A DNA stretch of 63,882 nt, filler included, from Cercozoa sp. M6MM (GCA_040357565.1; 10 parts of 10 records of this genome joined end to end with filler, not necessarily neighbours in it); one strand, 5' to 3'. Positions 1-12,139 are shown, numbered from the whole stretch's first letter. The notes: generated by a model not told the origin, from the sequence alone. Made by a program: numbers and translations.

Positions 1-41
<41 letters not shown>

Positions 42-792
42 CTCAGATGCTCAACATGTGCCTTTGCTACAACCTTTTCATGGCGGGAACCAAGCGCCAG
101 AAATTCGTTAAACCGTTAACGAATATACGACAATCTTCGCCCCTCCTTACCCCCCCCCCCCGCAGCAGAGTTCAGTACCACAAGCAGAGCACCCAAACTT
201 GAACAGCCACAGTACAACAACAACAACAACAACAACAACAACAGCAGCAGCTGCAACAACAACGCAGTAGCAACCACCAGTACAGTTGCAGCGGACAGTA
301 GTAACGTACGTTCATCGGGAACCGGAATCCGGTGGTCAATTTCAGTTTTGAGTTAGTTTAGTCTTCGAAGAACGATGAAGCTTGGCGTGGCGAGAAATAC
401 GCCATAATTACGCAGAAATACGACTGAATAACCAGGCGTTTTATTGTTTTGAGGGTGCTTATGCACATGTCAGTAAATTTTTTGGACAGCGTTCATTGAA
501 GGTAATACGTTGTTAATTTAGGCAGTGAGATGATAACGCACTGGGGACGAAATCATCCGATAGCTGGGGATTGCAGGATCGTTTACTGGCGGGGCCTCAA
601 GATTCAGAGAGCGGAGTCGGACAGATTGAGCCTCTAGTACAGCCACAGAAAATGTAGGCTACGAGTAAAGCAATTCATTACGGTCGTTTTAACTGTTCAA
701 ACAGTCAACTGAAGGAACATATTTTACCGACGGCAAAAATTGAAATATTTGCAGCAGCAAGCTTGCTTGACACCGTCGCCAGGCGCAAAAAT

Positions 793-1852
793 TCAGATCT
801 CTATTGACGTCGGTACATTGGTTGGAAGCAACAGGGTAAAGGACACATTGTTGATGAGGTTTCGCCGCTCAATTTGATACTGAATGCGAGCCAGATCTGC
901 AATGAATCGGCCATATTGTTCACGGTAACATTCAGAAATGTCGTTCTTGTTTATTGCCCTAAACACACAACCGGAGTTGTTGTTGCTTTCTTGGAACGTG
1001 AAGAGCCCAATCAGTGAACGCCAAATGAAACTGACAGATCAAGTGCATCTGGAAGCGGTGCAGGAGATCTTTCATGTTCGGTGCTCATCTTGAGCGGCAA
1101 GAGTGTGCGTAAACCGGGAAGCGAAAGAGTTCGACCGTATCTGATGACCTAAAAGCCGAGAAAGGAGAGCATAAATCTAGGTCCATAATTGCTTGCAGAC
1201 GCACCCCCTAATAGGTCATACTAACCTTCATGGCATCGGCGTGCGATGGCAAAGCTTCCAACAAGAATTGTTCGTCCACGAAACGTAGTTCAGCCTCTCT
1301 CTGTTCAAACAATATTTTTCAAAACACTTTTCCACTATATAAGCTTACACTCGGCATCTCTTTTAGCAGGTACAAGGGTCGAGCGGGCACAAAAGCGCAC
1401 GCTTCGTACTGTCCGAAGTTCACCGCTGCGTGCTGCGCCGTCGCTGTCCAAAGAAGAACAGACAAGAACTCCTTCAGTCTGCGGACTGTCAGAATGTGAC
1501 CCAGTCCCTTCAACGCGACAAACCTCTCATCACGCAACTCTGTGAACAGCTCTTGCAACAATTTGTCCGAGGCAACTGCTTTGTCGCTCTAGGAAATCTA
1601 ATTTAAACCCTCGAGTTGGTACGAGTAAAAGTACGGAGTAGATCGAGTCGATGCATTCGCTGACATAGCGGTTGATAGCAGCGTTTAAAAGCGCAGCGTC
1701 GTCGCGGAAATAAAATCCTGGCAGATCGTCGATCTCAGTTCCTGCAACAGAGTAAACTTAAATCAAAATCTAGATTGACAACTTTGCCGTACCAGCATCG
1801 TCAGGCGACGGAGGAGCCCAAAAGCCCCGCCGCTTCATATCCGCCTGCTCGT

Positions 1853-1891
<39 letters not shown>

Positions 1892-1898
1892 GTGTGTG

Positions 1899-1978
<80 letters not shown>

Positions 1979-2838
1979 TGAAACTGGCTCCCCAAAAGCG
2001 CCACTTTGATGTCTCCTGCATAATCAATGCCAGCGCTCCTATAAAAGCAAATCATCTGAACGAAGCTCTAGCATTTTAGCACGAGAAGAAGCTTACCATC
2101 CAAACCAAGAGATAAAATGTCGTCGATTATCGGCTCGGATTCGGCGATCAAAGTTTCGCGACCTTCAGTAAATTTAGAAGTACACCTGCGGTAGTCTTTG
2201 CACGTTGTCACAAAGATCACAATTACCTAGCGAGTTAATGGCTAGTGTTTGGAAGAAGTGAGGTTTCATGAATAGCATCACCTGGAAGAGCACAATCGTA
2301 CATCGCTAGTTTCATCAATATCAATACGGCAACCCCTTCCCACAAATAATTATTACAGCGTGTTTTGAAGGCAGTTTGCGGTTAAAACTGACAATGATTG
2401 GCTCGATGACCTAGCCAGTAAATACTGTAACCTACGCGGTCTTACGACTTTGGTACCAAGTGTGTCAACGCAAGGTGCGACACGAGTTCATGAATGTGGG
2501 CGTCCGCGACTGATACTAAAATAAAACCATTGACTCGAGCTAAAAGCAACCAACCAAACCTGGTCGCTTTTTTCCATACGCGTAATCGGGAAAGTACCAT
2601 GCATTTTTGCGAATCGCCATACGTATCCATTTGGTTCGTTGGGAAGGAACACTCGATTTTGCGACAACACTACAGTTGTGTAAATTTCTGGGCTTTTGTT
2701 TACTGTTATAACAAAGCAGAATCGGTACTCGTTTTACGAGTGAGTTGCACGGCCAGTGGCATCAGTTGTCGCTTCACTGGCACTTGTGTTTGCCTCAAGA
2801 ACATTTGTTCAATCTGTGGCATTGTGCGTCGTCTACCG

Positions 2839-2897
<59 letters not shown>

Positions 2898-2997
2898 NNN
2901 NNNNNNNNNNNNNNNNNNNNNNNNNNNNNNNNNNNNNNNNNNNNNNNNNNNNNNNNNNNNNNNNNNNNNNNNNNNNNNNNNNNNNNNNNNNNNNNNN

Positions 2998-3049
<52 letters not shown>

Positions 3050-6000
3050 GCGCGTCCACGCATACACGCAGTAGTATACAACGTAAACAATAGTATCGTA
3101 GTATACTTCTGCAGTGTAGCCCGAAAGTGACTGGCAGGTGTGCTTGTGTACACCTAAAAGATACAAACCGACAGTCTTCATTTATAAGAACGTCGAACTG
3201 GAATTCTCTGCACCATACGACGCTGAACATAGAGCAAAACCACTGGTGCATACAGCACCCTTCCTCCACGGTGACGCAAATGCCCTGCGTCAATAATTGG
3301 TTGCAGGCTTTGGTAGTCCACGCAAAACAGTTGTCTGAAAACAAGAAAGATACAATATATAAATTTTAGTGTTCTGCTCCCTGTCAGTAAATAAGATACG
3401 TGACCTTGAATCAAGCAGTTCCTGCAAATTCTGCTGTCCGATTTCAGCTAGAAAGGCATCGATGCGGCTACGAGTATTTTTGTCGTTCCGAAACTGTTAT
3501 AAGCTAGGGTATTCTCATTTTCCGCGCTGTAAACTTACACATCAACAGTGGGGGGGTACCAGAGGTGGCACTGCACCTTCGCAATGCTCAATGACGGAAG
3601 AATGAGCACCTGCGATGAAGCTTCCGGCAAAGGACTGATCGCTATCCCATGTCTACCCAGGGAACATTACTGTACCCTTTGGTGTTTTCTTTCCCGTCAC
3701 GCAGGGAATTCGTGTGCTGTGTCAAACGTACGTGCAAGGAGGGAGGCGGGTCGAAAAATGCATTGTCTCCAAAGTAAATGCCGTAGCGCGACTTGATCAA
3801 GGAAGGCCGCTCTCCTTCCTTCGAAGCAAAGCACGAACGAAATCCTTGATCAAGGTTGTCTGTGCTCCAAGTTAATATAAATTTACCCTCTGCGCACTCA
3901 GAAACTTGGATGACAACGAATCCCCCAACGCAGCTAGTTGCGACTTGGCACCTATCTTCCTTTGGTTCAGTTCGCAGGTCCACCATCTTAGGGTAAATTT
4001 ACCAATAATCCGCGCCTTTTCTTTGAATATCGGTACGTTATACGCCACGAGTCTGGTACTTTTCTCGAGATCAAAAGCGTCCGCTTGGGGTAAATGTGCA
4101 ATCTTCTTTGGCAACCGCTGTCGGGGGGGGGGGCATTTCAATTTAAAAAGGAGGTACTTAACTTTTAGTACCTGAAACGGAACGGGGTACGAAGTCAGGT
4201 GGTATTGCTGAACATCGCCGCCTCCCCGAAACTCCTCACCATGGATTCGACGCGCCTGAGGAAGTCAAACAGGCGGACTGCTGTGCACACGCGTATGACC
4301 ACACTCTGTACAAAGTGAGGTGCACCTGCGCGGCTTGTTGGTACACTTGCTTGCGTACGTGCTGCATGGCACCCAGCGGTCGGTGCTCGCGCAGTGTATT
4401 CCACACATTGAACTCAAGCATCTTGCACGACACCGTTCTTTCGACCTGAAAGTAGCACACGCATTGCACTCTAGGTTTAGACCTCCAAGTGAACTCTAAA
4501 TTTTACCTCGTTTTGTCCATTTCCAAAGTGTTGTTGGGGAATAATGAATTTTGCGACCTGGACGTAGCCGTCTTTGTCAATGTGTACGCCAGGCACACGA
4601 CTCAGCGGTTCTTTGGATCTGCCTGTAGTAATTAAACTGAAGGTAAACTGATACAATGGCTACCCCTTCGTACAAACTTTTCGCACCGGGAAACGTCCAC
4701 TCCTGATGGAGCTGCTCGATGGGTTGCGCGCACGCATCACGTTGAATTTGAACGGAGAGCGACATGCACGCAGGTTCTTTTCGGGTCGTTGTTGAGCGTT
4801 TGACTGCATCGCGAAGAAAATCTTTGCCAACACGTTTTTCTATGTCCTCGATTACATCGAAAATTGCCGTTCCTATGCTCACACCAGTGCACCAGCACAA
4901 AACAAAGGTCGCTCATCATCGTTACCTGTCTCGCTCAGGCACGGAGCGACGCGGTATTGCACCGCAAGGTCGCCTAGAGCGAAGGCTGCAGCCGAGTGGT
5001 ACGTGCCTGTTCAAACTCTAGGTGGAATCACTAACGCGAGAAGTGTAAATGTTATCCTCACTTGTAAGCGGGTTGATCTCTCCCTCTCCCGAAGACATGA
5101 CTGCCTGTACAATGCATATCACACCCCAGGATCATCTTTTAACAATTTATGTGTCCGCCTTAAAGGACGTTGTTAGGCATACCTGTCGCAACACGAACGC
5201 TTGCGTCAACTCAAGCAACTTAAACAGGCCTTCGTCCACCACAATTCTCCAGATCACACGTTTCAACGTTCCAGCGAAACGCGCCCACTCCTACGAGACA
5301 ACAAAGTAGCATCTTCCTGCCTGATCAAGGAACGAACGTACCACGCGTGCCCACCGCTCTAGCGCCGTGACGGAGGACACAACAAAGCGCGGTGACGTCG
5401 CGAGCACGAAGTCCTGAGTTGGAGAGTCGTAGTGTACCGCAAGGAAATCATCCTCGCTCTCTTCGTTTGTGTATTGGGTGCTCTTGTTGTAAGCATAGTT
5501 TTGCACTGGTGCTCGAACGTTGCGCACGAGGTTGCCGACGGATTCGAGTACCATTCCAAAGAACCGCGCTGATTTGCGCTTTCTTTCGCCTCGCAGAGGA
5601 TGCAACGGCAGCGGCTCAAACGTGTCGGGAAGCCATACCTTGACCGCAAACCCCCGCGTTGCTGCAACGAAATCTGATTTGTCGGAGGGTACCCAACTCG
5701 AGAACCGTATGGCAGCCGGGAATCGTACACCTCCGTGCATAAAAAGACCTAATTTACAGAAGACACAAGAAACGCTCTTCTAGTGCTAAACCCAAATCGG
5801 GTTCAACATAGTACCCTTGCGCAACTCAGTCGGCAGATTTTCGTCTATCACGAGTTCGGCGGCTACGCATGCTTGTTGCTTTGCAAAGACGATGCGATCT
5901 CCAAGTTCCAGTCCGTTCTTGGTGTTTGCATCATAATGTTTGGTGGCAAGTCCCGCCAGTTCCTCGCTCAGTTGTTCTATGCGCAACTGCATATCATCAT

Positions 6001-7008
6001 TAGCAAGGTAGGCGTCAGCTTCTTCCGATCCCTGGAAATCAATTATATTTAAACTTAGTGTACGAGTCTGAGGAGATTATCAGTAAATACCAGGGGCAAC
6101 GAAGCGGCACACGTTGAAAAAGGAAGCAGGCTGTCCACACGGCCCATTCGGGCTATAAGAACAGATGAGACCGTGAGGAGGAACCAAACTGAGCTCGCGA
6201 TGGCAGCTGCGAGAATGCGCAACACGCGACGGCGGACGATAAAGTTTCCTACAACCGCGATTTCGTGTCGTTTCGCAGATTCCAGCGAGAGGCCATTGTT
6301 GGATTGCTTCCTGCGATGCAGGTGACGAGGAATTCGCATGGCAGGTTTTTGCTCTTCTCGAACCAACGCTGGATTTCTGTGCCGTAATGACACTTTCGGA
6401 GAGGCACTGTGCGAGCGCTTTCTTGCTTTATCTCGAGAAAACGAGAAACCTTGACGAGCTTTTGGTGTTGAGCGAAAGTTGCGTTTCGTTCTTGAGCCGA
6501 TTCCGGGTTTGCGTGCCGGAGGACTCAACACCTCGGAAGCTGTGCTGGCATTGTGTTCTGCCGAATAGTCTGACCTGACAGGGCAAGGTGTCCCACCACT
6601 TGACCCTGAGGGCGACGAAGCAGGATGAGGTTCGATTAAAGGAGCCGGGGAGTTGGAACATGCTACGCAAGTTGGATCAGCCAACGGACAGTTGAAAGTG
6701 AGTTAGGGCAAGTACAGCGCATGTTCGAATCGAAGCCCGTCTCTTTGTCATCATTTTCTATTCGGCAGCGCATATGCAAAGGTGCTGCGGTGGTTGAACC
6801 GTTCAATAAATATACTCACCAAGTAGAACGACGGATCTGGGGGAACTGACTTCTGCCACGAACCACAGCCAAAACACCAGTGCGAGAACGAGTGGGCTTA
6901 GTACACTCCAAAATGTTATCTTTAAAAGACAGAAACACAGCCATCCAGCAGGGCACGAGAATGGAGTTAAGGAGGACAAATGGACATGGTCAACAAGCTT
7001 ACCGCCAT
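793..7008 (-). CDS. Catalase-related (allene oxide synthase/hydroperoxide lyase-like) domain - lipoxygenase fusion protein, multi-exon; 5' exons (6030-7008) tentative
   Basis: Manual GT-AG splicing gives one open frame. Catalase-like part (~5990-4230): DRIVFAKQQACVAAELVIDENLPTELRKGLF..FPAAIRFSS..D...TRGFAVKV, TQDFVLATSPRF, NPLTSTYHSAAAFALGDLAVQYRVAPC, DFLRDAV..ACMSLSVQIQRD..PIE..EW, VAKFIIPQQHF, CKMLEFNVWNTLREHRPLGAMQHVRKQVY. LOX part (~4120-793): WDSDQSFAGSFIAG, LFCVDY, LYAPVVLLY, LMPLAVQL, WRFAKMHV, DAHIHELVSHLALTHLVIEP, KPHFFQTLAINSLGRETL, ADMKRRG, FYFRDDA, TAQHAAVNFGQY, IERRN, C-terminus PTSIEI-TGA (793-795). Confidence 0.88.
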
Positions 7009-7456
7009 CGGACACTGCAGAGCTAGCTACTTGAGGCAAGTGATACCTCACAACTCAACAGACCACCTGTGCAAGTAAAGAAGCCGTAGTGGTCCGCAGT
7101 GGAACGTTACTTCGGGACGGTCGGGTCAAAACTGGTCACAAATGGTTCCAGCGCCGTGACCCGTCATAAACTGTAGGGGAGCGATTCAGGGGCGGTGAGT
7201 TTCCTGGGCCTGATAGTGATGCTGGGATACAGTACGTCAGAGCACCAGAACAGACAACTGGAAAGCCAGGGCAGAAGTATCTGAATGACTCTCTGTCTCC
7301 TGTTCTTGTCGCCCCCTAAAGTAAGCAACAAGCAACAATGCACACCTGCCTCAACGAACTAACGTGTTCAAACGTGCGCTGAGTGAACCTTATAGGCATG
7401 CTTAGACCAGCAAGTGCGAACTTTGCACCTTGATTATAATTTTGTTTCTGCAGATC

Positions 7457-9911
7457 ATGCCAGGCGCCTTGACACTGAGTGAGCTCGCCGCGCAGGGAGC
7501 GATCGAAGCCACCACAGTGATTGACACAGCGCGGTACGTTTCTTCAACGATCGACAGACCGTGGTTTGTAGCTTTCTCGACAAAAACCGTCCTTGTGCAG
7601 CGAGTTCGCCGACTGTTTCGACTTCAGTATCGATGCAGCGGTACCAATGACTGCTGTCTAGTGTTTTCCCAAAGGCATCTGAGAGTGCTTTGTAGAAACT
7701 GACTGCGTCGGAGAAAGAGTCGCTGCTGACGTCGCTGACGACCGAGGCCATGAACAGCGCGAAGAACTCGATCGCGCACCGCGCGGCATGTCTCAAGCTG
7801 CTCAAGGTGCTCGCGCGCTCGCGTGGTACACCTCGCTGTCTTCTCCATGTTCCTTCACTTCTCTGACTGACTGACAGGTGATCTGTCGCCTATGTACGCC
7901 GACTCTTTCCTGCCACAGCTGCTGCCTGCTGCCACCGAGGCTCTGTACACTCTTCCCATATCCAATTCTGTATACAAAGTATGTCCACAACACGCGTAGC
8001 AAGGAACAGGACGGCGAAACACTGGCGCTGCAGGCAGTGCACGTGTGCATCAATTGCTGCATTCTCGACATGCAGAAGGGCGTTACCAAGATTCTGTCCA
8101 GCACGCGTGTGCACGAGTGCATCGATACGATTCTCATCACAGCCAAGGACACGCTCCTGCTCGCTTCGACCGCGCGCGTTCTCTTCTTCCTGACTGTAAA
8201 CTATCAGTTTACCTCTTGTCTCCATTTGCTCCTTTTAACTTCTTTGTGTCCCTTGTTGTGCATAGGTGATGCCAGACTTTGCGGACAAGGTGAACGATCA
8301 GGGCATCATGGACTCCAGCACCTCTGTACGAGGCCCTGTGTGTGTACACCTGCGTCGAATTTTTGTATGCATGTTTGTTGGCAGGTGCAGGACCTGTCGA
8401 AACTAAACGTGAACACAAACGAACTGGTCACGTACAACGCCTTGTTCCGCCTGTTCCTGCAGGCGACCGAGGGTGTGTTTACACCTTTCCTTCGTATTAC
8501 CTTCTCCTCTCTACCTCCTTATGTACCCTCCCGACAGACGACGAGTGGTACACGTCGCAAGCCTCGTGCGAACTGGCCAGTCGATGCTTGCAGACACTGT
8601 TCAACCTGAGGTACACGTTTGCCCCCCCCCCCCACTCACCTCTGCACCCTGCTTTACTTCCTCCCACACACGCAGCAACGCCGCCGACAACAAGCTGCCG
8701 CCGGAGATGCAACTCGGTGCCGCACTCCTGGGCAACAAGTGTACCTCTCTTCTTCCTTCCTGGTTCTGTTCACATGTATCTGTCCATATGTACCTGTCCA
8801 TAAGTACCTGTCCATATGTACTGCTCGTGTGCCATTGTAGCCAATATGGAGCGCGACACCACACTGCTGGCCGAGCGACTGAAGCAGACGGGTTACCTGC
8901 AGCGCGTCATTCTGCGCGTGCGCGACGTGCTGCACGTGCCGCTCCGCCAGGCCTGTCCGCACTACGAGCATATCCGCATGGTACCTATTGATACCTCCCA
9001 TTCCCTTCCTCAGTGATGCGTATCGATACACACGATTCGCGCAGGCAGCGGCGTCGAAACCGTCGCCTCTGTCGGTCAAGAACGACGTCATCAACGTCAT
9101 GCTGCACTTTCCGAACGATCGCGTGCTGCTGGCGCCGCTGCTGCGCGACCCGGAGAAACGTTTCTTCCGAGGTACCTGGTCACCCCCTACCTCCTCCCTC
9201 CTGTTACCCCTTGCCCATACAGGACTGCAGGACTATGCTGTGTGCACGCTGCGCTGTCCGGGCAATAACAAGGCTGCCACCTTGTGTCCTCTCCTCATGG
9301 TACACTGAGCCTTTACTCCTTAACTCTCCCCTCATTGTACCCTGCTCTCAGGTACTGTTCGGAGTTGCCAAGGGCAGTCGCGTATCCTGCCACGCGCTGA
9401 AACATTTCGTGTTCGGTGCACTCGCCGAGCGACCCGAGGAATACGTTGCCCCTGCTGTACCCCTCTACCTACCTACTCCTGTTCTGCCTCCTCCTACTAC
9501 CCTTTACCATGCAGGACCCGCAAAGCGAAGCGATGGACCCGCCTGAGTTCGAGGAATCTGAGGTACACTGTCGCTGGAACTTTTGTTGCCTCTGCAGCTC
9601 TACCCCCTCCCCCCACACACAGAAGATCAAGGGCCAGGAGTCGCCGCGTTTCTTGTTCACGCAGCTGGTGACGTCGCTCGACTCGCACGTCAAACTCATC
9701 GTGCAGCAGCTTCTGTTTGCCCTGTGCGACGAGGACCGTGCCTTTCTTCCTCTGATGCTACCTATTCCTTGTGCATTTGCTATGTTACGCCCTCCCTGTC
9801 ACCCCATGCAGCCCAGGAGTACATTCGACTGCTCGGTTTTGGCAACGCCGTCGGCTTGCTGGCGCAGTCCGGCGATCTGCCTGGCATGCTCGGTACCTGT
9901 TCTTCCTCCCC

Positions 9912-9959
<48 letters not shown>

Positions 9960-10059
9960 NNNNNNNNNNNNNNNNNNNNNNNNNNNNNNNNNNNNNNNNN
10001 NNNNNNNNNNNNNNNNNNNNNNNNNNNNNNNNNNNNNNNNNNNNNNNNNNNNNNNNNNN

Positions 10060-10107
<48 letters not shown>

Positions 10108-10358
10108 GACCTTGTATGACTGGTACTCTTGCAGGTCTCGGCCAGGGCCAGGTGCGCCAGCGAGAACTCACGCGCGAGGAACTCGAGCGAATGTCACAGG
10201 AGGGTCTTTTCCTCCCTCGCTCCTGCCTGCCTCAGTTGGCCTTTTCTCGTACTATATTTTAGTCCTATTTTTGTCCTTCCTGCTGCGCAGCAATGGAGCG
10301 ACGCGCTCGCATCGAAGCAGAGGAAAACGCCTCCAAGGACGACTCCAACAGCCACTAA
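7457..10358 (+). CDS. RIC8: Ric-8/synembryn family G-alpha chaperone/GEF, ~18 exons
   Basis: The spliced product has ACLKLLKVLARSR near the N-terminus and the Ric-8 C-terminal signature VKLIVQQLLFALCDED-QEYIRLLGFGNAVGLLAQSG. ATG at 7457, TAA at 10356-10358. Confidence 0.8.
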
Positions 10359-10664
10359 TGACCGCACTGTAACAGAGAAACGTGTTGCCGTGCGTTGTTC
10401 AAGTTTATTATTCCACTCGATGGATCGCGACCAATCGCGCACCCGATGCCGCTCGGGCGGACATGGTGCATTCAGTATTACAGTACTAGACCGTACATCG
10501 TGCATACACTGATAGTGTTGTACAGCACTGTACAGTATCAGCGACGACTACTACTTCGGCGAATAAAAATGAATTCCTGATCCCATCGGGCTGGGATTGA
10601 TCCGAGATCGGAACCGCCGTTCTCCTGTCCTGGAACGTGAGTGTGCCGGACTTTGTGTGCGCGC

Positions 10665-12057
10665 ATGGGCGTCAGTAAGGAGGCGGAAGCAGAGCGCGTT
10701 GCGCGACTGTAGGCTGAGCTGCACAAACACATGAGCTGAGCACGTGTTTTGCTTTGCTTGTCATGCAGTCACATATGTGTTCCTGTGCATTTCTATCGTG
10801 TGTAGCGCCGAGTGGTTTGATGCCACGGGCGTCAAGGACACCGAGGTGCTTATCGAAGGTCGTTTATACGACGTGGGCGGTGCCTTCATCAAGAAGCACC
10901 CAGGTACACTCGATACATTGACCAACATCATGAACCTGGACTGACTGCTGACTGGCTTGGTTTTTAGGTGGCAGCATCTTCCGATTTTACCACCCCAAGT
11001 CCGGCCGTTTGCCTGATGCCACTGACGCGTATATAGTGCTTTGTTTTGTCTGTCCCTGTGCTGCATGTATTGCGGTGTGACCAGGTTCAACATGTTCCAT
11101 GCCAAGACGCGGCCGACCAAGTGGCTCGAGTCGCTGCCGTCGCGGCCGTTCGAAGAGGTCAAGCCGAGCAAAGAGGATGCCATCACGACCGACTTCCGCA
11201 AGCTCGAGCAGGAGCTGCGCAACGAAGGTACCTGACATTTTACCCTGGAATATCATGTGTTGGTCTATGTATCATGTGCGACAGGCTACTACGACTGGTC
11301 GCCGCTGCACCTGCTGTACCGCTTCTCGGAGATTCTGCTGATGCACGTGCTCGGCATCTACCTCGTTCTGCAGGCCACGCCTCTGGTACAAGAGTGTTCT
11401 GTGTATCACTCGATGTATCACTGTGTGTGGTGTTTTGTTTCGACAGAAGGTGCTGGCTGGTTTGATGGTGCTCGGTGTCGTGCAGGGTCGCTGCGGTTGG
11501 TACCTGTTGTCTCTTTCATGCATGTGCATGTGTGTGTGTGTCTGTGTGTGTGTGTGTCTGTGTATGTACGTGGATATGTCTGCAGGCTGATGCACGAGTG
11601 TGGTCACACGAGTGGCACCGGCAACGCGTGGCTGGACCGTCACCTGCAGATGTTCCTCTACAACTTTGGTGCCCTCATCACACGGTGTTCTTGTTTCTAG
11701 CTGTGTGACAGGAGTTTCTATCTGTGTGACAGGCTGCGGTATGTCGGCGGCCTTCTGGCGCAACCAGCACAACAAGCACCACGCCACGCCGCAGAAACTG
11801 CAGCACGACGTATCGTGTCTTTTGCCTGTATCCCATGGTACAGAGGTATGCCTCGATGGTGTTTGAACAGGTTGATTTGAACACCCTGCCGCTGCTGGCC
11901 TTCCACGAGAGCATCGCCACTCTGGCCAAGGTGTGGCTTCCCTTCACATATTTGGTTGTTTCATACACAAACACATGTGTAGCACCCGTTCGTCAAGAAG
12001 TGGATCCGCATCCAGCACGTGCTGTTCCCGACTGTGACGTGTCTGCTTGTTGCCTTG
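10665..12057 (+). CDS. Front-end fatty acid desaturase (delta5/delta6-like, cytochrome b5 fusion), 3' truncated by contig end
   Basis: EVLIEGRLYDV..KKHPGGS (cyt b5 HPGG), QGRCGWLMHECGH (His box 1), WRNQHNKHHATPQKLQHDVDLNTLPLLAF (His box 2). Confidence 0.92.
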
Positions 12058-12085
12058 GGTACTTTCACCTGCATGTGTGTGCGTG

Positions 12086-12139
<54 letters not shown>

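Follow-up and report, generated by a model that had tools for sequence, protein, structure and literature searches.

A predicted fusion of a divergent catalase-family haem domain and a lipoxygenase in the rhizarian amoeba Cercozoa sp. M6MM

The stretch of DNA analysed here (the window) comprises 63,882 nucleotides, filler included, in which parts of ten records of the Cercozoa sp. M6MM assembly GCA_040357565.1 are joined end to end. Positions 1-12139 are one whole contig (C386, 12,139 bp) of this assembly, which totals 23.6 Mb in 2235 contigs. The minus strand of the contig carries a gene whose predicted product, P0001 (1086 aa), consists of a catalase-fold haem domain followed by a lipoxygenase (LOX); the public record of this protein is entitled 'MAG: hypothetical protein MHM6MM_005583 [Cercozoa sp. 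M6MM]'. The amoeba, a marine organism obtained from the gills of fish, was assigned to Apofilosa, within the Rhizaria (PMC11069148), and has since been named Lemnamoeba sinaloensis (PMC13746701). Its genome holds about 13 introns per gene; introns average 82 nt in length, neighbouring genes lie a median of 162 bp apart, and the contigs of the draft assembly end in simple-sequence repeats (PMC13746701).

The coding region of P0001 (793..6147, minus strand) is an exact spliced translation of the contig, made up of 30 exons and 29 GT-AG introns and ending with the stop codon TGA at 795-793. Twenty-seven of the introns measure 46-82 nt, while the other two (132 and 274 nt) hold dinucleotide simple repeats; their donors are mostly gtac or gtaa, and the GC content is 0.52 in the coding sequence versus 0.42 in the introns. 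GC at third codon positions is alike in the catalase-fold and LOX halves, and each half is single-copy in the M6MM genome. The public record was found through the exon at 5345-5746, with 100 % identity over the exon, in a phmmer scan of 1.84 billion representatives that otherwise gave only a spurious WD40 protein (P0002). Stop-free minus-strand pieces were used for a first pass of homology searches, and the P0001 record itself for searches with the whole protein. In the exon-level Pfam scan, piece 1322-1588 (minus strand) proved to be a lipoxygenase fragment (PF00305, E 2.6e-14), and piece 5294-5779 (minus strand) gave only a sub-threshold catalase signal (PF00199, E 0.1).

The initial annotation had spliced this gene by hand from the sequence, and its version is close to the public gene model. 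All the motifs that it quoted are present in P0001: EHRPLGAMQHVRKQVY..ARRIH in exons 9/10, the linker across exons 10/11 (4255-4172, 4117-4003), then HELVSHLALTHL, QHAAVN, and the C-terminal Ile. It counted more than 20 short introns, and the model has 29. It placed the gene at 793-6030; the end at 793 holds, but the start at 6030 falls one exon short of the model start at 6147. Its central proposal, a single frame that runs from a catalase-fold domain straight into a LOX with all iron ligands, agrees with the exact mapping of P0001, the LOX alignment, and the hhalign and VIA-align comparisons given below.

The LOX half (residues 474-1086, exons 11-30; 796..4117, minus strand) consists of a helical N-terminal part and a catalytic domain; the part assigned to the lipoxygenase proper is about residues 540-1086. 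P0001 matches PF00305 with an E-value of 9.7e-58 (196.6 bits, against a cut-off of 23.6). As first annotated, the PLAT domain is missing: the Pfam scan of P0001 gave no PF01477 match. Residues 490-550 are predicted to be helical, and the LOX half is therefore grouped with the PLAT-less bacterial or cyanobacterial mini-LOX type; PLAT or beta-barrel domains are found in animal, plant, and coral LOX and are absent from mini-LOX. Among PDB entries, 54 LOX sequences match P0001. The best is 5med (a '15-lipoxygenase' with a 569-aa chain; 5e-38, residues 700-1003), which we take to be the Cyanothece mini-LOX CspLOX2, and the coral 8R-LOX follows at 3e-36. Residues 661-695 and 1002-1037 of P0001 are additional segments relative to 5med.

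Five iron ligands could be read from their codons on the minus strand: His751 (2477-2475), His756 (2462-2460), His942 (1432-1430), Asn946 (1420-1418), and the C-terminal Ile1086 (798-796). In a 13-sequence LOX alignment each of these columns is invariant, and with every iron ligand in place the LOX half is probably enzymatically active. The two halves were folded separately with AF2, from separate alignments, and the LOX model reached pLDDT 60-90 over residues 560-1000. At the stereo-control site, where the choice between Ala and Gly sets S or R oxygenation, P0001 has a Gly (Gly794, before the conserved Arg in '..INSLGR..') and the compared LOX have Ala. This residue suggests that the LOX half would yield an R-hydroperoxide.

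The catalase-fold haem domain occupies residues 26-454 (exons 2-10; 4229..6013, minus strand). Searches with the P0001 sequence against Pfam and PDB matched nothing N-terminal of residue 550, and beyond the one exon signal mentioned above PF00199 was not reached by the whole protein. A language-model look-alike search gave a lead only, to small bacterial 'catalase family proteins' (score 0.76). Of 80 bacterial LOX loci fetched by LOX motif, three carry an open reading frame (ORF) that matches P0001 residues 1-480, at 3.4e-15 in an Oligoflexus metagenome-assembled genome (MAG) and at about 1e-7 to 1e-8 in two actinobacterial genomes. These three ORFs, like other bacterial members of their family, do reach PF00199; the family counts at least 1768 proteins, and NCBIfam has no model for the group. 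When P0001 was compared by hhalign with 24 family members, the match reached 99.7 % (E 1.7e-25, 328 columns, residues 36-473, 25 % identity), and a hidden Markov model (HMM) of the family scored P0001 at 124.7 bits.

Structural comparison led to the same fold. The AF2 model of the haem half, built from a 123-row alignment, has a core with pLDDT 80-96 over residues 30-135, 200-235, and 270-450. Foldseek matched it with probability 1.0 to catalases, to coral allene oxide synthase (AOS), and to the 33-kDa catalase-related protein of Mycobacterium avium. With VIA-align, model residues 26-454 gave Z 22.7 to the AOS half of 3dy5_A (rmsd 3.7 A, 288 aa); the values were 22.5 for 1u5u, 21.5 for 3e4y, and about 20-21 for ordinary catalases. 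Over all of these comparisons Z was 20-23 across 270-298 residues, so that the coral AOS is tied with catalases. The catalase fold of the haem half, on which the initial annotation had staked its reading, is thus established. In addition, the hhalign and family HMM results uphold its view that the nearest relatives are the small bacterial proteins: judged by its sequence profile, the haem half is a strongly diverged representative of the bacterial 'catalase family protein' subfamily and not of the coral AOS (cAOS) lineage. A metagenome contig scan of limited reach found no close relative of P0001. Similarly, a word-index search with residues 1-480 among proteins of 597-1900 aa, also of limited reach, returned only P0001 itself and no second fusion-length protein with this N-terminal domain, a result that does not show absence because of the length window. 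An ordinary catalase is encoded elsewhere in the M6MM genome (C1170:198-1442, plus strand; PF00199, best exon E 9.3e-71, at least five exons).

The haem pocket was compared column by column with 122 bacterial family members. In the family profile, the His of 'RDAHPK' and the Asn of '..INHPVFF' fall at the positions of the distal His and the distal Asn, respectively, of solved catalases. At the distal pair P0001 has Val67-Phe68 (codons GTC TTT; 5885..5890, minus strand), where coral cAOS has Thr66-His67 and catalases have Val-His; position 68 is His in all 122 relatives. The distal Asn, which is Asn137 in cAOS and Asn148 in human catalase, is replaced by Thr209 (codon ACG; 5396..5398, minus strand) at a position occupied by Asn in 104 relatives and Ser in 18. 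Two more substitutions accompany these, Ser at position 109 (Asn in 122/122) and Gln at residue 72, in a His column that is invariant or nearly so. On the other side of the haem, the proximal ligand Tyr440 (codon TAC; 4341..4343, minus strand) is a Tyr in every relative, the haem-contacting Arg65, Arg106, and Arg436 are kept at columns that are Arg in 122/122, and Arg447 pairs with a family Arg in hhalign.

The haem-pocket residues described for cAOS are R64, R102, R360, and Y353, together with T66-H67 and N137 (PMC5617202). The first four are kept in P0001, while T66-H67 and N137 are lost. Because Tyr440 and the haem-contacting Arg residues are kept, the haem half probably still binds haem. 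It cannot, on the other hand, act as a catalase or as a coral-type AOS, since the distal His, which catalase turnover requires, and the distal Asn are replaced by Phe68 and Thr209. In cAOS, His67 is the proposed proton abstractor that gives the allene oxide (PMC5617202).

Taken together, the best explanation is that one gene encodes a PLAT-less LOX and a divergent catalase-family domain that would rework the LOX hydroperoxide, a reading to which we give a probability of roughly one half. As to mechanism, our preference, held at slightly less than even odds, is that the tethered haem domain cleaves the hydroperoxide at its Tyr-ligated iron. The LOX would oxygenate polyunsaturated fatty acids (PUFA) of C18-C20 to an R-hydroperoxide, which would be passed to the tethered haem domain; there, the O-O bond would be cut at the Tyr-ligated iron without acid-base help, and rearrangement would give an epoxy alcohol, ketone, or aldehyde as the product, not an allene oxide. 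A bolder and rather doubtful proposition is that the catalase-fold/LOX fusion arose separately from the coral cAOS lineage, built in a rhizarian from a bacterial-type 'catalase family protein', and that its Tyr-ligated haem domain has done away with the distal His and Asn in nature while continuing to act on hydroperoxides of fatty acids. If true, it would represent a new reaction environment for the catalase fold, with products other than allene oxides.

Several observations weigh against a hydroperoxide-converting fusion enzyme. The distal His is replaced by Phe68, and the same exchange in Proteus catalase (H54F, 3hb6) was deposited as 'inactive'. The Thr-His pair has been described as the signature of those catalase-related haemoproteins whose substrates are hydroperoxides of fatty acids. 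P0001 departs from the family at about half of the conserved positions, and its branch in the catalase-family tree measures 7.55 changes per site; the haem domain may have lost catalysis. Furthermore, the argument for one gene is built on genomic sequence and a predicted gene model, in which the start, the insertion at residues 131-196, and exon 17 are uncertain. Finally, the case stands on a single gene of one draft genome, and its haem domain may simply be inactive.

The strongest alternative accepts the fusion and denies the chemistry. The catalase-fold domain would be a non-enzymatic module (structural, haem-binding, regulatory, or for docking to a membrane or partner), and the LOX would release plain hydroperoxides; we consider this a serious competitor, at about one chance in three, though less probable than the fusion enzyme. 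The changes listed above at invariant or nearly invariant columns (His to Phe68, Asn to Thr209, Asn109 to Ser, and His72 to Gln), the inactive H54F catalase, and the extreme branch length all fit such a module, as does the 65-aa insertion with its low model confidence. However, R65, R106, R436, Y440, and R447 are kept along with 60 other family-conserved positions, the core folds confidently, and the frame is intact over 10 exons. In addition, P450-type AOS and hydroperoxide lyases (HPL) cleave hydroperoxides without a distal His.

In a less favoured alternative, which the initial annotation had proposed, the haem domain is a catalase-related AOS or HPL of the coral or cyanobacterial type, fused to its LOX and working by the established mechanism to give allene oxides or short aldehydes. 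The domain order is that of the coral and cyanobacterial fusions, the proximal Tyr and the Arg residues are kept, and the best structural matches are 3dy5 and 1u5u, although these are tied with catalases. Nevertheless, the Thr66-His67 pair and Asn137 of cAOS are replaced by Val67-Phe68 and Thr209, at the sequence level neither cAOS nor the AOS half of 3dy5 was matched, and the haem domain comes from a different subfamily; with these residues lost the proposal was not sustained, and we judge it improbable.

That the two halves belong to one nuclear gene, with a two-domain architecture of catalase fold (26-454) then LOX (474-1086), is very probable from the structure of the junction. This region (3875..4264, minus strand) comprises exon 10, intron 10 (54 nt), exon 11, intron 11 (51 nt), and exon 12, and is free of stops over 130 codons. 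Both introns are divisible by three in length and stop-free, and the first unspliced in-frame stop lies at 3874-3872. A stand-alone catalase-family gene would thus have no end point before that stop, spliced or not. A stand-alone LOX would have no start point either, because P0001 contains no Met between residues 432 and 663, a stretch that spans the start of the conserved LOX core at about residue 557. Two neighbouring genes wrongly merged by the gene predictor are therefore unlikely, and we give this alternative very little credence. The genome is very compact, with its median intergenic distance of 162 bp (PMC13746701), and introns 10 and 11 are in frame, hence their status as introns comes from prediction only. 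However, no in-frame stop occurs until 3874-3872 whatever the splicing, the Met-free stretch of 230 residues covers the conserved LOX core, and bacterial LOX align to P0001 from about residues 514-548 onward, in the helical N-terminal part, leaving no spacer between two genes. That the gene is decaying, or is an assembly chimera formed across the gap at 2898-2997, is the least probable account of all: the gap, the surplus residues 661-695, and the long branches of both domains speak for it, but 29/29 introns are GT-AG, 30/30 exons are in frame, all LOX ligands are intact, the exons flanking the gap encode consecutive LOX segments in the same orientation, and the gap is flanked on either side by the same (TG)n repeat, in line with what has been described for this assembly (PMC13746701).

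The gap itself lies within intron 17 (274 nt; 2833..3106, minus strand). Exon 16 closes with '..YAPVVLLYVQ', a LOX segment, and the conserved segment that comes next, '..LMPLAVQL', is found in exon 18; in an alignment with 12 LOX homologues no homologous residue is missing across the gap. Exon 17 (16 aa; 3107..3153, minus strand) has no counterpart in these homologues. Together with the start of exon 18 (2832-2772) it accounts for about 35 surplus residues (661-695), equally without counterpart and modelled at pLDDT of about 51-55, and for these reasons exon 17 and the first 61 nt (about 19 codons) of exon 18 are doubtful. The exon-16 donor can also be joined in phase to acceptors before 2813 or 2771, the latter giving the usual LOX spacing; the gap would be intronic and the frame continuous under every splicing option examined. 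Long (CA)n, (TG)n, or (CT)n tracts are found at 1850-1976, 2836-3060, 9930-10090, and 12080-12139, that is, in introns, at both internal gaps, and at the contig end, which agrees with the published remark that simple repeats broke the short-read assembly.

The other uncertain parts of the model are in the haem half. Exon 1 (Met1..Leu19; 6091..6147, minus strand) sits within a longer open frame at 6699-6058, so that the true start is uncertain. Homology to the family starts at about residue 25, in exon 2, which has no upstream Met of its own; an upstream exon is therefore required. The frame at 6699-6058 (minus strand) is open for 214 codons and has no Pfam match. Upstream of the model Met it encodes a strongly hydrophobic stretch of 19 residues (6225-6169; mean Kyte-Doolittle value 2.06), preceded by a Ser/Pro/Arg-rich region. 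Translation may in reality begin further upstream and add a membrane anchor or targeting peptide, or the frame may be the end of a neighbouring gene. Residues 131-196 (5435..5632, minus strand) form an insertion of about 65 aa that all of the bacterial family lacks; it is unmatched in hhalign, and its pLDDT stays below 50 over residues 138-196. Within it, in exon 3, lies for example an in-frame GTAC..AAG stretch of 69 nt, a length typical of introns (5483-5551, minus strand), which may be an unrecognised in-frame intron.

Both domains look bacterial in type. In a tree of P0001 with 45 bacterial, four plant, and five animal LOX, the P0001 LOX falls outside the plant and animal groups on a long branch (1.83). 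Its neighbours are the long-branched LOX of a Cloacimonadota-binned contig and a clade of short LOX from cyanobacteria, with weak support above the pair formed by P0001 and the Cloacimonadota sequence and a warning of long-branch attraction. The catalase-family tree shows no supported sister to P0001. The old lateral acquisition followed by intron gain suggested at first is plausible, since the host averages 13 introns per gene, but both domains have long branches and the separate phylogenies support no donor.

The three bacterial loci in which the two gene families lie together differ in arrangement. In the Oligoflexus MAG (L013:133-3615), the LOX and catalase-family genes are convergent and about 480 bp apart; in a Pseudonocardiales MAG (L077:1346-4212) and in Lentzea aerocolonigenes (L052:7199-9996), the catalase-family gene follows the LOX gene by about 36 bp on the same strand. 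Transfer of such a gene pair was considered and finds no support so far: the linked copies, which score 23-53 bits against P0001, are not its nearest relatives, and unlinked ones score 60-72 bits. The bacterial LOX most similar to that of P0001 belongs to the Cloacimonadota-binned contig (L089, G005:C22), which has two LOX genes 7 kb apart (631-1689 and 9062-10354); a catalase-family gene is encoded on a further contig of that bin (L088, G005:C398; 1292-2608). Beside an acidobacterial LOX, a 384-aa ORF (L008:3117-4268, minus strand) shows a weak catalase-family HMM match (E 3e-4 in a small search) and no Pfam match. The bacterial pairing of LOX with 'catalase family protein' genes may merit a study of its own.

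About 4.6 kb from the LOX gene and on the opposite strand, exons of a cytochrome b5-fused fatty acid desaturase are found at 10744-12139 (plus strand), cut by the contig end. The pieces contain the His-box-like motifs HECGH, HNKHH, and QHD and match Cyt-b5 (E 0.0067) and FA_desaturase (E 0.0014), weakly because the gene is split into exons. The position of a PUFA-making gene beside a PUFA-oxidising one may be due to chance, given the compact genome.

Fusions of catalase-related domains with LOX have been described from corals (PMC5617202) and cyanobacteria (PMC11719350), and are a textbook case of substrate channelling in oxylipin synthesis. A literature search found no description of a catalase-LOX fusion in protists, and the words lipoxygenase and catalase are absent from both M6MM papers (PMC11069148, PMC13746701), in keeping with the novelty first claimed for this lineage. 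Besides corals and a few cyanobacteria, the rhizarian amoeba, free-living or amphizoic, would thus be the third setting of a catalase-fold/LOX fusion in the literature found. It is distinguished by a different catalase subfamily, by 29 spliceosomal introns, and by the lack of a distal His. The rhizarian case would show that this fusion architecture was assembled more than once, and would point to a use of oxylipins for signalling or defence in a eukaryotic supergroup about which little is known. It would also let enzymologists see, in a natural case, whether hydroperoxide chemistry in the catalase fold really depends on the Thr-His pair.

Among known systems, the coral AOS-8R-LOX of Plexaura homomalla (3dy5/1u5u) and the coral HPL-LOX likewise have an N-terminal catalase-fold domain with a Tyr-ligated haem followed by a LOX. 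The haem domain of P0001 superposes on that of AOS-LOX with VIA-align Z of 22.7/22.5 and rmsd of 3.7-4.0 A over 288-290 residues, and the haem Arg residues and proximal Tyr correspond. However, the two haem domains have no detectable sequence similarity, the cAOS residues Thr66-His67 and Asn137 face Val67-Phe68 and Thr209, and the coral enzyme has a PLAT domain, which P0001 lacks. In the LOX tree, the LOX half of P0001 is no closer to animal LOX than to others.

The cyanobacterial fusions, known from Anabaena/Nostoc PCC 7120 and Acaryochloris marina, combine a catalase-related domain with a PLAT-less mini-LOX of R-type oxygenation (PMC11719350). The P0001 LOX groups weakly with the cyanobacterial short-LOX clade, and its best PDB match is the 569-aa 5med; the 80 fetched bacterial LOX loci contained no catalase-LOX fusion. 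The cyanobacterial fusion enzymes are active on hydroperoxides and, in contrast to P0001, have a distal His.

By profile, the N-terminal domain of P0001 belongs with the bacterial 'catalase family proteins' (about 340-440 aa, for example in Acinetobacter), which are mostly uncharacterised. Many of them begin with an L-x-x-x-x-G-C consensus, presumably a lipoprotein signal. As for the 33-kDa protein of M. avium ssp. paratuberculosis (3e4w/3e4y), the family profile matches 3e4w at 2.4e-11, and 3e4y superposes on P0001 at the Z of 21.5 given above. The bacterial members stand alone and have the distal His and Asn109 in 122/122 cases; P0001 has neither residue, is fused to a LOX, and carries the 65-aa insertion. 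On the LOX side, the closest parallel is CspLOX2, the Cyanothece mini-LOX (PMC11719350), which like P0001 has a LOX catalytic domain and no PLAT; P0001 shares about 30 % identity with the 5med mini-LOX and has Gly instead of Ala at the stereo-control site.

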